Shown here: positions 25,020 to 30,570 of the stretch, one piece after another
Layout of the letters: each line of letters begins with the position of its first letter
How positions within the stretch are numbered: the stretch's first letter is position 1
DNA from: Bugula neritina
Taxonomy: Eukaryota > Animalia > Bryozoa
Assembly (NCBI GenBank): GCA_964035545.1
Contig: OZ037767.1
Location: 23,948,628-24,012,627, forward strand
Direction: 5' to 3'
Length of the DNA stretch: 64,000 bases
Program-made: the position numbers and the translations under genes
The notes under the pieces: generated by a model
What the model saw: only the letters and a program-made list of their open reading frames with translations
The model's database searches: none
What the model was told of the DNA's origin: nothing

Positions 25020-28000
25020 ATGATATCAATTGCTATTCTTTTAATTGTGGCTTTGGGTAAGTATTTTAACTGGACTTTGGCATCTTTGTTTCTTTAACAT
25101 ATTTCAATCATGCTGCTTTAACTTCTTCTTCATCATGAATATAAAAGTAAGTTTATTATTTGCAAAATGATAGTTGTGTTTTTTATTTTTAGCCGTTTGT
25201 GGTGTGCTTTGTGCGAATTTGTGGGTGGTAAGTAATAGCAAATTAATTCAAATTAGTTAGCATTATCATAGAATTAACTTTCCTAGTGTACTATTGCAAA
25301 AAACTTTTTTCAGTTGTAAATTATGGCAATAATATTTGTACATGCACCATACTTTGTGCGCTGCATTATATTGCAAATTGTTATTATATTCATCACAAAC
25401 ACCTCACCTTTTGTCCATGCTTCTTGCTCTTCAGAAAGTATCAGTATGACACATTGGAAAGTACAAACTTTTTTGAGAAAGGAAGCTACTTAATAGCAGA
25501 GTGTGTTCTATATTGTTAGAATAATTTAATAGCAAACCTCATTTCTAACAATAATTTTGTAGAAGTACAAGAGGCTGGTGGAGAAATGCCGGTAAGTAAT
25601 CTCTCTCCCATAAGAGGCAGTGACTGATTAACCTATGCTAGCTGAAGTGATATCATCAGGAATGAGTGCTGCTATATTTGAATACAGAACATATCATAGT
25701 GATAACTAGTAAAATATATTATTATATTACGCATTGAGGATAAAATATGTTGTTTTTAAATTTGTTTCTATAATTAATTGTCTAAAAATTTAATGTCGTA
25801 GAAGAACAGTGAAGGATTCTCACTCATTCACAACAAGCAGATAGCAGTTTTTACTAAACTTTGTGGGGCCAATTAAGACAATTAGTGTGTTAATACGGTG
25901 TCGATGCTTTCAATATTAATTTCTGTTATTTTTCTTTTCAAATGGCACAGAGAGATGGAGAGGGAGAAAGATCTTGTGAAAGTAAGTCCTAATCAAAAGT
26001 ATATTATCTGTATACAGCAAAGAATTTTTGACTTGTATATAATTATTACTTATTTGACAATTAATATGTTATATGATAAGATATGATATAATATATTATT
26101 ATTTATATTTGAAATTTATCACAATGATTGTGGTATACTATTTTTTATTAATTTATGAATAACAACTGCTTGCGTTTTGCTGTGACGGTTCACAGAAAAC
26201 AATAAGTTCTACACACAACTCAGGACTTATAAAATCTTCAGTTACAACTAATTACATGCATCTTCCATATGTACACCTATGTATATACAATCATTATTGA
26301 AAACTTACTGCACAATTAAGCAGAAAAAGTTCAAATAATTAACGGAAATTTATTGCATTTACTATGGTTGTTTTTCTTAGATGGAAAATGATGAACTGAG
26401 GAACAAGTAAGTATAACCTGATGACTGAAGGAGTAGTAGAGAGGCCAGTGGAGTTCATGTGAAGTGGGTGGGGTGTAGTGTTGTGATTACCAGGTAGTCC
26501 ATGTTGCTTGCAAGCCAGAGGTTTCAGGTTCGATTCTCAGGGGGGGGGGGGGGCAATTATTTTTCAGTGCAAAGAAGTAAGTTGGTTGTTCACATAATAA
26601 GTATCCATGTGTATATGTTGAAAAAAACAAGGTTTGTATGTACACAATTGGTGTCTTTTATGTTACAAAGCTACACATATCTACACCTGAAATCATAAAA
26701 TAGAGCTATATATAGTAGCTGCTTCCCAAAATACTGAATGATATTCAGTTATTTGTTGAATTACGATATAGTGCATAAGCTCTATTTTTCTAATAAAATT
26801 GAAGAGTGCTTCATTTAACTGTGTATGTTAAAGCCTGAAAGGAACAGAACCAACAGTTGAGTTCAGTGTTTTGGATTATAGTAATCATTCTGTCAAACTA
26901 TACTATAGTTAGTTATTATTATTGTCTTTTGTGTCTGTACTTCTATTGGCTAAAATTTCACACTGTAAGCATTTTTCAGGTTGTGCTGTGCTGAGAGAAT
27001 GATGGAATTGGTGAGTCTAGAATATTAACTTTTATTTAAAGTTTCTACTATTGCAAGTATAGGCGGTGCTACTAGTGTTATATAAGTTTCAAAAAAGCGT
27101 TTTACTTTGATGATAAATGAGGTAAAAATGCTATTCATAATTAGTTGTGCATGTCTGCTACATTAGTTGCTGGTATAAAACTTTTTCAAACTAATGTTTG
27201 TAAATAATGTGAATAAATTGAATTCTTATCAAAACAGGATTATTATGAGGCTTCATTTATTATCAAATTACCTGAGATAACAATTGTCCTGCAGCAGCTG
27301 CAGTTGTGGTATTGTGCTATTTTAGGTTATTCTGTTACAAATCTTAAAATATTGTTTACCTTTTACCTTTGTAGCTGAAAGCTGAGATGATGGAGGAGAG
27401 AGATTCCCTGTAAGTTATTATAACATTCTAAATATAAGTTCAATTAGTACGTGAAGTTCTTATTGAATGGTAATTTTTAAATGAATTGAGTTGGCCTTGC
27501 CTAGGTTGCTAGTTCCATTTTAAAACGAATTGCAGTTTCAAAATGATATGAATTTTGCATGCTTTTTAGTTCCCAATTGTAATAATTCCTGCTAAACTTT
27601 TCTATCTCAACTTATATCAACTGCTCAAGTTGAATGTGTAGAACACGTTTACTATTTTTTGCTATATTTATAAATATCTTAATTTCTTATAGTGCCAAGA
27701 CAAACTCGGAGATGTCCGAAGCCATTTTGGCACATCAAAGAGACAAGGCAAAGTGGGAAGAGTGAGTTTTAGATTTTCGATAACAACACTAGTTGTGTTT
27801 GTATTAAAAGTGTAGAAGTTTTATATAATTAACTCAACAGGTGAAAGTTTAGACAGTGTTGAAGCAAACTGGTAAAAATTATTAAATTTGTCACTATATG
27901 GCAGCTCAAACCTGTGATCTTGAGTCAAAAATCAATTTTTGTGATTAGTTTCTATGTTTGATTTTGAAAAAGTTTATTCATAAAGCTTGTGAAGCTATGT

Positions 28001-30570
28001 TCTTGAGTTATACAAAAGTAGTCATATAGATTGGTATACTCACTCTGATAGATAATAATTCAGAGATACAGCAAGTAGAATCAACTAAAAACAGCATTTA
28101 ACATTCAACTATATAATGCTTATTGGCTCTAATTTTGTGCAACATTTGAAACCTTAGCTGTTTAAATTTCTAGATTGCTAGAATGTTTTGGCTACAGTTT
28201 GACTTTGTGAAACTTCTTAAATCGAAAATATTACAACTTTTAGATTTTACCAAAGCTGCTCACATTGTTGAAAATAAAAATGCATCAAGCTAGTTACAAC
28301 ATTGTCAATACACACACGCACACACGCACACACGCACACCCAATATATGCTTCAATAATATTTTGGAATTTCTGTCACTAAAATAAGTTTTATCTTGTTT
28401 CTAATTTTTGCTACAGAACAAAGGAGCAAGGTGAAAGGAGATTAGTGGTAAGTAAAATTGTGCACAATTAGTATAACTAGTGAATTTGTTCTATGAGTCA
28501 TGGTATTTAACTAACACTGCTGACTACATGGACATCACATTCTCTCGTTCACTTAATTACTCCATCTAACATATCTATATGCCACATTTCATATACCAAG
28601 TGATTTATCCTAATGACAAATTATCAACTTACTGCTTTGTTACATTCTCAATGCCTCCTATACACTGATCACTCTTCATGTACTACAAAACTAACTGCAA
28701 CCATCTATTAATGTTTGTTATCTATTTGTATTATAACTTGTGTTTTGCAGAGGAATAAGATTGAGCTGGCTATCGGCAAAAACTACGTCAAAAGAATGAA
28801 ACAAGAAAGCAAAGGGTGAGCTTGAAACTTAATTCATCCAAAAAAATATAAATATATGAAAGTGTTTACAATGCTGTTATAAACATGTGTGTGATAGCTA
28901 TATAATAATTGGTCAGAATTAATTGTCTTCTCTTGTTTATTGTTTCTCAGACTGAAGGCTCAGGTGAACTACCTGCAGCAGGTTAAGGTATGTTTGTTGC
29001 TGTTAACTTTTCATTTGATTTATAATTGTAGCTGACTTTTAGTTGCTGCTATAGAAAATTTGTTACCCATTTAGCAGTCCTGTAAGTGACTATACTAGCT
29101 AGCTAGTCACATAATAGAATGCATATGAGGTTATGTGCTAGATTTTTGTGTCACTGAAAAACCTCATATGTTCATAAAATAGGACAGTTCTATATTATAT
29201 TTATCTGACCTGTTCTGAAAATGCCACCATTGTTATCGGCACATCCGAACATATTTTTCAATTGAGGTCAATTTGTTTCTCTGAATTATATGCATACGCC
29301 ATGTAGACGAAGTAGTATAATAGATACTCTCTATATTTTATACAGGACTGGTATGAGTGGAAAATGTCAAGGTAATATTTTAAAAAATATTTTGCTATCT
29401 ATTATGTGTTACCTTAATATTTCAATGCTGCACACACACACGCGCATGCACGCACGTACGTACATATATATATATATATATATATATATATATATATATA
29501 TATATATATATATATATATATATATATATATATATATATATATATATATATATATATATATATATATATATATATATATATATATATATATATATATATA
29601 TATATATATATATATATATATATACATGTATATACATGTACATATATATATATATATATATATATATATACATATATATTTCTTTGAATTATATAATAAT
29701 ACATAACAAAGTAATATGAGATTTATAAATATTAGTTGTTGTGTGTTTGAAGTTTGATGAATGAGAACAAAGTGCAACAGAAAGACAGAGGGGTCAACAC
29801 AGACAAAGAAATCAAAAGTTGTGGAGGGTAATTATAGAATTTGATTTTGAAAACTGTAATCAATTAATAAGCAGTATTTTCTTCACGTCTCTAATTTTAA
29901 GCCGTCATTGAGATAAACGGATTTTTAGAGTAGAGAAAAGAGTTGAATTTGACGAAAAGATGGCTAATGGGAAGAAGAAGGGTGTTAAGAAGGCTAGAAA
30001 GTAAGATTTACTCAAATGTTATTCTTTAGATCAGTCAATTTGTAGTAGAAAGAAAAAGTTTTAATATGAGTAACAATCCACACGACCTAGCCATCAATAT
30101 GAAATGTTAACTTAATCAAAAATATTGAAATCTGAATTCATATAACTGGATTACTCAACTGATCTGTTATTTAAAAACACACAAACCACAACAGGATCGG
30201 TGCCAAACCTCGAAACTGTCCTGATAACTCGGCATGTTTTTATACTGAATGAAACTGGTGAACCTAGGCTAAGGAGCTAAGAAATGTATTTTTGGCTAAA
30301 GTTTCATACAAAATAGAAAGAAAGACAGCAATAGAATCTGATGCGTGTGATTGTATTATAACTGTACGCAGAGCATTTACATATCAAGAGCACAAAACTC
30401 CACTGAATGAGTTTGTATCTGACAGCTCAATGAATATTTATAAAAGTATAATATTATCATCTCTATACTGTAGTAGTCTGTTTAATACTCAGTTGTGTTG
30501 CTATGGTTACAGGGGATGTTTTGGAGGATTCTCCCTCGGGCTAGACGATCTAGCATTCAAAATTTATTAA
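25020..30570 (+). CDS. Orphan short-exon gene, 15 exons (25020-25056, 25193-25227, 25563-25591, 25951-25981, 26381-26406, 26980-27010, 27375-27409, 27693-27761, 28417-28447, 28751-28815, 28951-28987, 29346-29371, 29753-29827, 29929-30000, 30513-30570); 218-aa N-terminal transmembrane/signal plus coiled-coil protein
   Basis: All 14 introns are GT..AG, mostly with GTAAG/GTGAG donors, and every junction is in phase. The 657-nt ORF reads [75 protein letters not shown]...[15 protein letters not shown] at ~30602. Confidence 0.8.
26470..26540 (+). mobile_element. tRNA-derived SINE head fragment
   Basis: TTGCTTGCAAGCCAGAGG followed by B-box GGTTCGATTC; same core as the 37206 copy; does not fold as a full tRNA. 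Confidence 0.55.
29464..29677. repeat. Long (TA)n microsatellite in an intron of the short-exon gene
   Basis: About 160 bp of pure TA plus a degenerate tail; source of the spurious IYIY ORFs. Confidence 0.97.

Follow-up and report, generated by a model that had tools for sequence, protein, structure and literature searches.

A small family of genes built from micro-exons in the bryozoan Bugula neritina, with a predicted N-terminally anchored helical product

Chromosome 3 of the ruby bryozoan Bugula neritina carries a gene whose entire coding sequence is divided among very short exons. The gene lies in a 64,000-nt stretch of genomic DNA (GenBank assembly GCA_964035545.1, contig OZ037767.1, positions 23,948,628 to 24,012,627 of the forward strand). 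We refer to this whole stretch as “the window”, and we number positions from its first letter unless chromosome positions are given. The window is AT-rich, with ~28–37% GC. The gene occupies ~23.9736–23.9792 Mb of the chromosome, on the plus strand, and its 657-nt coding sequence (CDS) is split over 15 exons of 26–75 nt. A first-pass annotation, made from the letters of the window, had proposed this exon chain as an orphan gene for a membrane-anchored coiled-coil protein. When we recomputed the model from the sequence, all 15 exons were found where they had been placed, with exactly the proposed lengths; all 14 introns are bounded by GT and AG, and the joined exons encode the proposed 218 residues followed by a TAA stop codon. 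Here, we describe the gene, its relatives elsewhere in the genome, and a possible way in which its product works. Taken as a whole, the sequence evidence suggests a small, lineage-restricted family of micro-exon genes with an N-terminally anchored, helical product. The structure of the gene is unusual, while the kind of product is ordinary.

The exons divide the protein into small, recognizable parts, all encoded on the plus strand. Exon 1 (25020–25056, 37 nt) contains the ATG and the first half of a putative membrane anchor; exon 2 (25193–25227, 35 nt) encodes the second half, including two conserved cysteines. Both have GTAAGT donors. The basic flank of the anchor, KYKR, and the start of a predicted helical rod are encoded by exon 3 (25563–25591, 29 nt). 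Exons 4 (25951–25981, 31 nt), 5 (26381–26406, 26 nt), 6 (26980–27010, 31 nt), 7 (27375–27409, 35 nt), 8 (27693–27761, 69 nt), 9 (28417–28447, 31 nt), 10 (28751–28815, 65 nt), and 11 (28951–28987, 37 nt) follow, and exon 12 (29346–29371, 26 nt) encodes a DWYEWK motif. A variable linker is divided between exon 13 (29753–29827, 75 nt) and exon 14 (29929–30000, 72 nt), the latter also encoding a cluster of Lys and Arg residues. The last exon (exon 15, 30513–30570, 58 nt including the TAA) encodes a conserved GCFGGFSLG motif and a C-terminus that ends in IY.

Seven of the donor hexamers are GTAAGT and two are GTGAGT, and the acceptors are preceded by pyrimidine-rich tracts. GTAAGT occurs 10 times on the plus strand of the locus versus twice on the minus strand, and 7 of the 10 serve as donors. 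Exons have 42.5% GC and 66% purine, versus 28.9% GC and 49% purine in introns. The intron phases are, in order, 1, 0, 2, 0, 2, 0, 2, 2, 0, 2, 0, 2, 2, 2. An in-frame TGA (25002–25004) lies 15 nt before the ATG, with no AG in between, and the base at position −3 of the ATG is A. The region immediately upstream (24860–25019) is a putative promoter with a short 5′ untranslated region (UTR); in it, ATTGG motifs (reverse CCAAT) lie ~80 nt before the ATG, and a TATA-like, AT-rich stretch lies ~50 nt before it. Overlapping ATTAAA/AATAAA polyadenylation signals (30598–30607) lie ~30 nt past the stop codon, in a block, taaataaatattt. No stop-free stretch of at least 125 codons contains an exon in any copy of the gene. 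A search for internal duplication of exon pairs as a source of the tiny exons found no repeats within the locus except an (AT)n tract. Two introns hold repetitive DNA. Intron 5 contains an interspersed repeat of ~150 nt (26417–26567), in which a tRNA-like GGTTCGATTC box precedes a G tract; because dozens of copies, 72–80% identical, are found on all chromosomes, the repeat is probably a family of short interspersed nuclear elements. In intron 12 (29455–29695), a long (AT)n microsatellite follows a (CA/CG)n-like tract and gives rise to spurious ORFs of 96–138 codons on both strands.

The gene is not a singleton. A DNA search of the Bugula neritina genome found three further copies on chromosome 3, each on the opposite strand, and the family lies within 520 kb. 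We refer to the window gene as W, to two intact paralogs as B (~24.1755–24.1826 Mb, 85% DNA identity to W) and C (~24.2406–24.2467 Mb, 80% identity), and to a partial, decayed copy as D (~24.4889–24.4929 Mb, i.e., 24488944–24492877; 84% identity). There are thus three intact copies and a pseudogene, in addition to a relative in another sample (see below). Searches of the same genome with the peptides of exons 8 and 10 found only these four loci, and neither a retrocopy nor a relative with fused exons. What was duplicated is only the gene (~6.5 kb), from ~640–850 bp upstream of it to 130–420 bp downstream. No neighboring genes were duplicated with it: the 20-kb flanks of B have no DNA in common with those of C and, beyond short repeat matches, neither set has DNA or translated similarity to the window.

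The copies provide the evidence that the exon chain is a gene. The first-pass annotation had argued that 14 consecutive phase-compatible junctions are unlikely by chance. This argument is weak by itself, because the same stretch contains 6,097 alternative stop-free chains with the same ordered exon lengths when the sole requirements are GT/AG borders and an open frame. What sets the chain apart from chance is its conservation in other copies. B and C retain all 15 exons, with open frames of 225 and 227 residues, respectively. W and B both have GT at all 14 donors and AG at every acceptor; the sole splice change in C is an exon 14 acceptor that is displaced by 3 nt, in frame. Given a W–C intron mismatch of 14.5%, the chance of keeping 56 splice bases is ~1.6e-4. 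The five indels that separate the exons of W and C all have lengths divisible by three (3, 12, 9, 9, and 6 nt), which holds for 19–22% of 60–79 intron indels. The exon indels include a 12-nt insertion in exon 4 that is shared by B and C, and 9-nt indels in exon 13 of C. In B and C, translation would start 12 nt further upstream (MSETLII...), and exon 1 has a 3-nt deletion, with its hydrophobic character retained. The ratio of nonsynonymous to synonymous substitution rates (dN/dS) is 0.31–0.39 overall and 0.15–0.36 for the helical core. In simulations of neutral change, 0.4% of trials still had an open frame at 65 substitutions (the W–B distance), and none of 20,000 trials did at 130 substitutions (the W–C distance). 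The block with the AATAAA signal is identical in all four copies, and the upstream block with the ATTGG motifs is conserved in the alignment of W, B, and C. D serves as a negative control: its exons 1–6 are unrecognizable, exon 7 being the first that can still be recognized, exon 9 has a 4-nt insertion that shifts the frame by +4 and a donor that has changed from GT to AT, and exon 14 is truncated. With high confidence, we take these patterns of conservation to mean that the window gene is a real protein-coding gene under purifying selection, in which no exon exceeds 75 nt, as had been proposed.

Similarity among the copies is distributed as a mosaic. In the 5′ third, B and C resemble each other (88–97% identity), with W apart; in the 3′ third, the similar pair is W and B (93–99%), with C apart; the middle is 91–97% alike across all copies, including D. 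Such a pattern suggests that the copies have exchanged sequence by gene conversion or recombination. Paralog B has the same exon structure as W and is 93–99% identical to it in 300-nt windows over positions 28500–30299. It differs from W in lying ~200 kb away on the other strand, in its start codon and anchor sequence, in four extra residues in exon 4, and in its C-terminal peptide. B also has a second, distal copy of the end of intron 14, exon 15, and the 3′ UTR (~24175560–24175710). The acceptor of this distal exon is intact, a 3-nt insertion leaves the frame unchanged, the stop codon is at the homologous position, and there is a separate AATAAA; the exon encodes GCFGGYFSLCLENINYSIY. Judging from these features, it is probably an alternative terminal exon that would give a third type of C-terminal peptide.

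The only relative found outside the assembly is genomic. An exhaustive search of a library of 1.84 billion representative proteins with a 43-residue open stretch holding exon 8 gave a sole match (P0001), an unspliced genomic ORF on a 2.56-kb Joint Genome Institute (JGI) contig from sample 3300002729, which we refer to as L012. This contig is 76–79% identical to every Bugula neritina copy, and hence comes from another genome. It keeps exons 8–12, open and with identical lengths. The peptide of exon 8, which is thus present in L012 too, is identical in W, C, and D. In exons 9, 10, and 12, D is closer to L012 than W, B, or C are; D also holds a tandem duplicate of exon 10. An intact representative of the D/L012 subtype appears to be missing from the assembly but present in the other sample. 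Other searches gave no match. A word search with a 100-residue open stretch holding exon 15 was restricted to proteins of 55–175 residues, a range that would miss a 218-residue protein, and a degenerate pattern for the whole of exon 11 had no matches in a metagenome contig collection that evidently lacks L012. Pfam gave no match at E-values up to 10 for the peptides of exons 8, 10, 13, and 14 or for the open stretches around exons 8 and 15, pieces with only 21–24 exonic residues and correspondingly low power; exons 1–7, 9, 11, 12, and 15, each encoding fewer than 20 residues, were left out as single-exon queries. In these low-power, exon-level searches, then, the family appears to have no relative outside Bugula-like DNA.

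The predicted proteins share a simple layout. An N-terminal hydrophobic run of ~23 residues (residues 1–23 in W and 5–27 in B and C) is preceded by 0–4 residues that are neutral or acidic, and is followed by KYKR in W and by KNKR in the other copies. The Kyte-Doolittle mean over 19 residues reaches 2.99–3.16 at the N-terminus, with a maximum of 0.53 elsewhere, as expected for a single transmembrane segment. None of the copies contains a proline in its 218–227 residues. Over residues 29–92 of W, in a fixed heptad register, 13 of the 19 a/d positions are hydrophobic, versus 13 of the 45 other positions, and this pattern is conserved in all copies. Conserved cysteines are found at two positions in the anchor, nine residues past the anchor, in the middle of the rod, in the linker, and in the final GCFGG motif; those along the rod are single (W residues 33, 55/56, 174, and 202). 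The three intact copies have no N-x-S/T sequon. In the last third of the protein, where dN is as high as 0.45, the variable linker is followed by the Lys/Arg cluster and then by the conserved GCFGG(F/Y)...IY end.

These features suggest a working model in which the protein is a membrane-anchored scaffold or tether. The 23-residue N-terminal segment would be an uncleaved signal-anchor. The length of the hydrophobic run favors this reading. Given the neutral or acidic residues before the segment and KYKR or KNKR after it, the positive-inside rule would place the N-terminus in the lumen or outside the cell and the rest of the protein in the cytosol. The proline-free heptad region (~residues 29–92, probably continuing to ~155) would form a helical rod in the cytosol, probably a dimeric coiled coil. 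The fast-changing linker and basic cluster would present the conserved GCFGG...IY peptide of the last exon, which may act in docking or else make a second contact with the membrane, possibly in palmitoylated form. The first-pass annotation had suggested a signal-anchor with a cytosolic coiled coil and a basic tail. The hydrophobic N-terminus, its basic flank, and the heptad-patterned region agree with that claim, while the cytosolic location fits the positive-inside rule and should be read as a prediction. The roles offered in that annotation (organelle tether, gamete protein, or recognition protein) are speculative. We estimate a probability of about 0.7 that the best explanation as a whole is a membrane-anchored helical scaffold or tether with a cytosolic rod, encoded by a selectively maintained gene.

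Several points weigh against this explanation. The topology, dimerization, lipidation, and location proposed here all derive from general rules, and the heptad signal is moderate, with a window score ~2.3–2.5 standard deviations above shuffles. Aligned exon identity between W and C is 80%, which is not above their intron identity of 85.5%; the protein must therefore evolve fast, chiefly in the anchor and the last third. The exhaustive search with the exon 8 stretch found no transcript-derived protein in the library, and L012 has GC in place of GT at one donor. Lastly, the start codon of B and C is missing from W, whose frame opens with an ATG 12 nt further on, such that W could in principle be a recently silenced copy.

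Two alternatives concern the gene itself. If the chain were a chance assembly of GT/AG-bounded open segments, with no gene behind it, the thousands of other same-length chains possible in the same stretch would be easily understood. There would then be no reason for exactly this chain to be conserved in two other copies, with only in-frame indels, a dN/dS below 0.4, and intact splice sites, when neutral change would have closed the frame. The conservation in paralogs and the neutral simulation refute this alternative, and we assign it a negligible probability. The other possibility is that only B and/or C are functional, and that W is a young, unexpressed, or dying duplicate that owes its open frame to recent conversion. 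The loss of the B/C-type ATG is in keeping with such a history, as is the 91–99% identity of the middle and 3′ parts of W to B, which fits recent conversion. Yet W has an in-frame ATG of its own, with A at −3, directly before an intact hydrophobic segment. Between its anchor exons and those of B and C there are 14 nonsynonymous and 10–11 synonymous changes (dN/dS 0.23–0.29), with hydrophobicity kept. All 28 splice dinucleotides and the polyadenylation signal are intact, and D illustrates how lost constraint looks in this family. We consider it very unlikely that W is a dying copy.

Other alternatives accept the gene and differ as to its product. The hydrophobic segment could act as a type II anchor or be cleaved off as a signal peptide, in which case the cysteine-bearing rod would be secreted, or lie outside the cell or in the lumen. 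The protein would then resemble tetherin or GOLM1-type proteins and might be a fast-evolving surface or recognition protein. Several features are of a sort often seen in surface, immune, and reproductive proteins: the cysteines in the rod, which could make interchain disulfides, the fast evolution of the last third, the mosaic exchange between copies, and the alternative last exon in B. The charges argue otherwise, being positive on the C-terminal side of the segment, with only 0–4 neutral or acidic residues on the N-terminal side, and a hydrophobic run of ~23 residues is long for a cleaved signal peptide. The C-terminus is too weakly hydrophobic for a glycosylphosphatidylinositol (GPI) signal. 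The lack of sequons points the same way, but weakly, with only ~1 per protein expected by chance. On balance, the opposite topology or secretion is the main rival reading; it is unlikely, although it retains an appreciable probability. A more speculative reading is that the family is a diversifying recognition device restricted to bryozoans, in which gene conversion and last-exon swaps vary the C-terminal peptide on an anchored coiled-coil stalk. We regard this as a long shot. If it were true, the device might act in, e.g., colony allorecognition, gamete recognition, or the handling of the bryostatin-producing symbiont, and the family would have arisen independently of the schistosome micro-exon genes described below, with non-symmetric micro-exons.

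Rfam and tRNA scans of the window found no match, and none of eight larger ORFs around the gene had a Pfam match above the cut-off. A 179-codon cysteine-rich ORF lies just upstream of the gene (22898–23437, plus strand); with no Pfam match above the cut-off, it could be either an unannotated gene or a piece of a mobile element. Further upstream, two near-identical ORFs of 90 codons (18903–19175, plus strand, and 21191–21463, minus strand), ~2 kb apart, form an inverted repeat pair that may represent the ends of a mobile element. Downstream, two open stretches of 217 and 113 codons on the minus strand (35520–36173 and 36890–37231) encode acidic, Ser/Asn-rich peptides with no Pfam match, and look like exons of a neighboring gene. 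Minisatellite-like tandem repeats at 42043–42641, 54131–54696, 55626–56074, 58220–58513, and 63141–63464 contain long, repetitive, spurious ORFs in several frames.

The finding opens no long-standing question. The family illustrates that a gene invisible to ORF scans can be established with no data other than the genome sequence, provided that the genome holds further copies of it. Being small, fast-evolving, and mosaic, it is also a tidy case in which to study gene conversion and the recognition of very short exons by the splicing machinery. The assembly used here (GCA_964035545.1, tzBugNeri2.1) carries a transcriptome-based Ensembl annotation, with 8.23 exons per transcript on average (PMC11480708), and the gene may already be included in it. 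Exons this short are unusual for the genome: those encoding the myosin-tail coiled coil are ~160–1900 nt, versus 26–75 nt here, and the annotated average per transcript compares with 15 exons in 657 nt.

The closest known parallel in gene structure is provided by the micro-exon genes (MEGs) of Schistosoma, which are built from symmetric exons of 3–81 bp (bioRxiv 10.1101/2023.06.21.545858). Like a MEG, the Bugula gene has nearly its whole CDS in very short exons (in this case, all 15), its introns are far longer than its exons, and its N-terminal exons encode a hydrophobic segment. The family is also, as in MEGs, small, lineage-restricted, multi-copy, and fast-evolving. The differences are equally clear. 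MEG micro-exons are symmetric, and skipping them varies the protein. Only 3 of the 13 internal exons of the Bugula gene (exons 8, 13, and 14) are multiples of three, such that skipping most single exons would break the frame. Hence, despite its short exons, we do not file the gene as a MEG, because symmetry is lacking. MEG products are small and secreted, whereas the Bugula product has 218 residues, a predicted helical rod, and an anchor that is probably not cleaved. The host is a bryozoan, not a flatworm, and no sequence relationship is expected. With ~21 introns per kilobase of CDS, the gene is a clear example outside the flatworms of a gene made wholly of micro-exons.

The predicted product has its own parallels in N-terminally anchored coiled-coil proteins. 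Examples are kinectin and RRBP1, GOLM1 and GOLIM4, and tetherin. As in this group, the predicted Bugula protein has few residues ahead of a single hydrophobic helix, which is followed by a basic stretch next to the membrane and by a long, charged rod that would be helical. It is much shorter than kinectin and RRBP1, and, unlike tetherin and GOLM1, it has no cytoplasmic tail ahead of the anchor. It also ends in a conserved C-terminal motif of its own, GCFGG...IY. None of the exon-sized Pfam queries gave a match, and the likeness to these proteins is one of layout.

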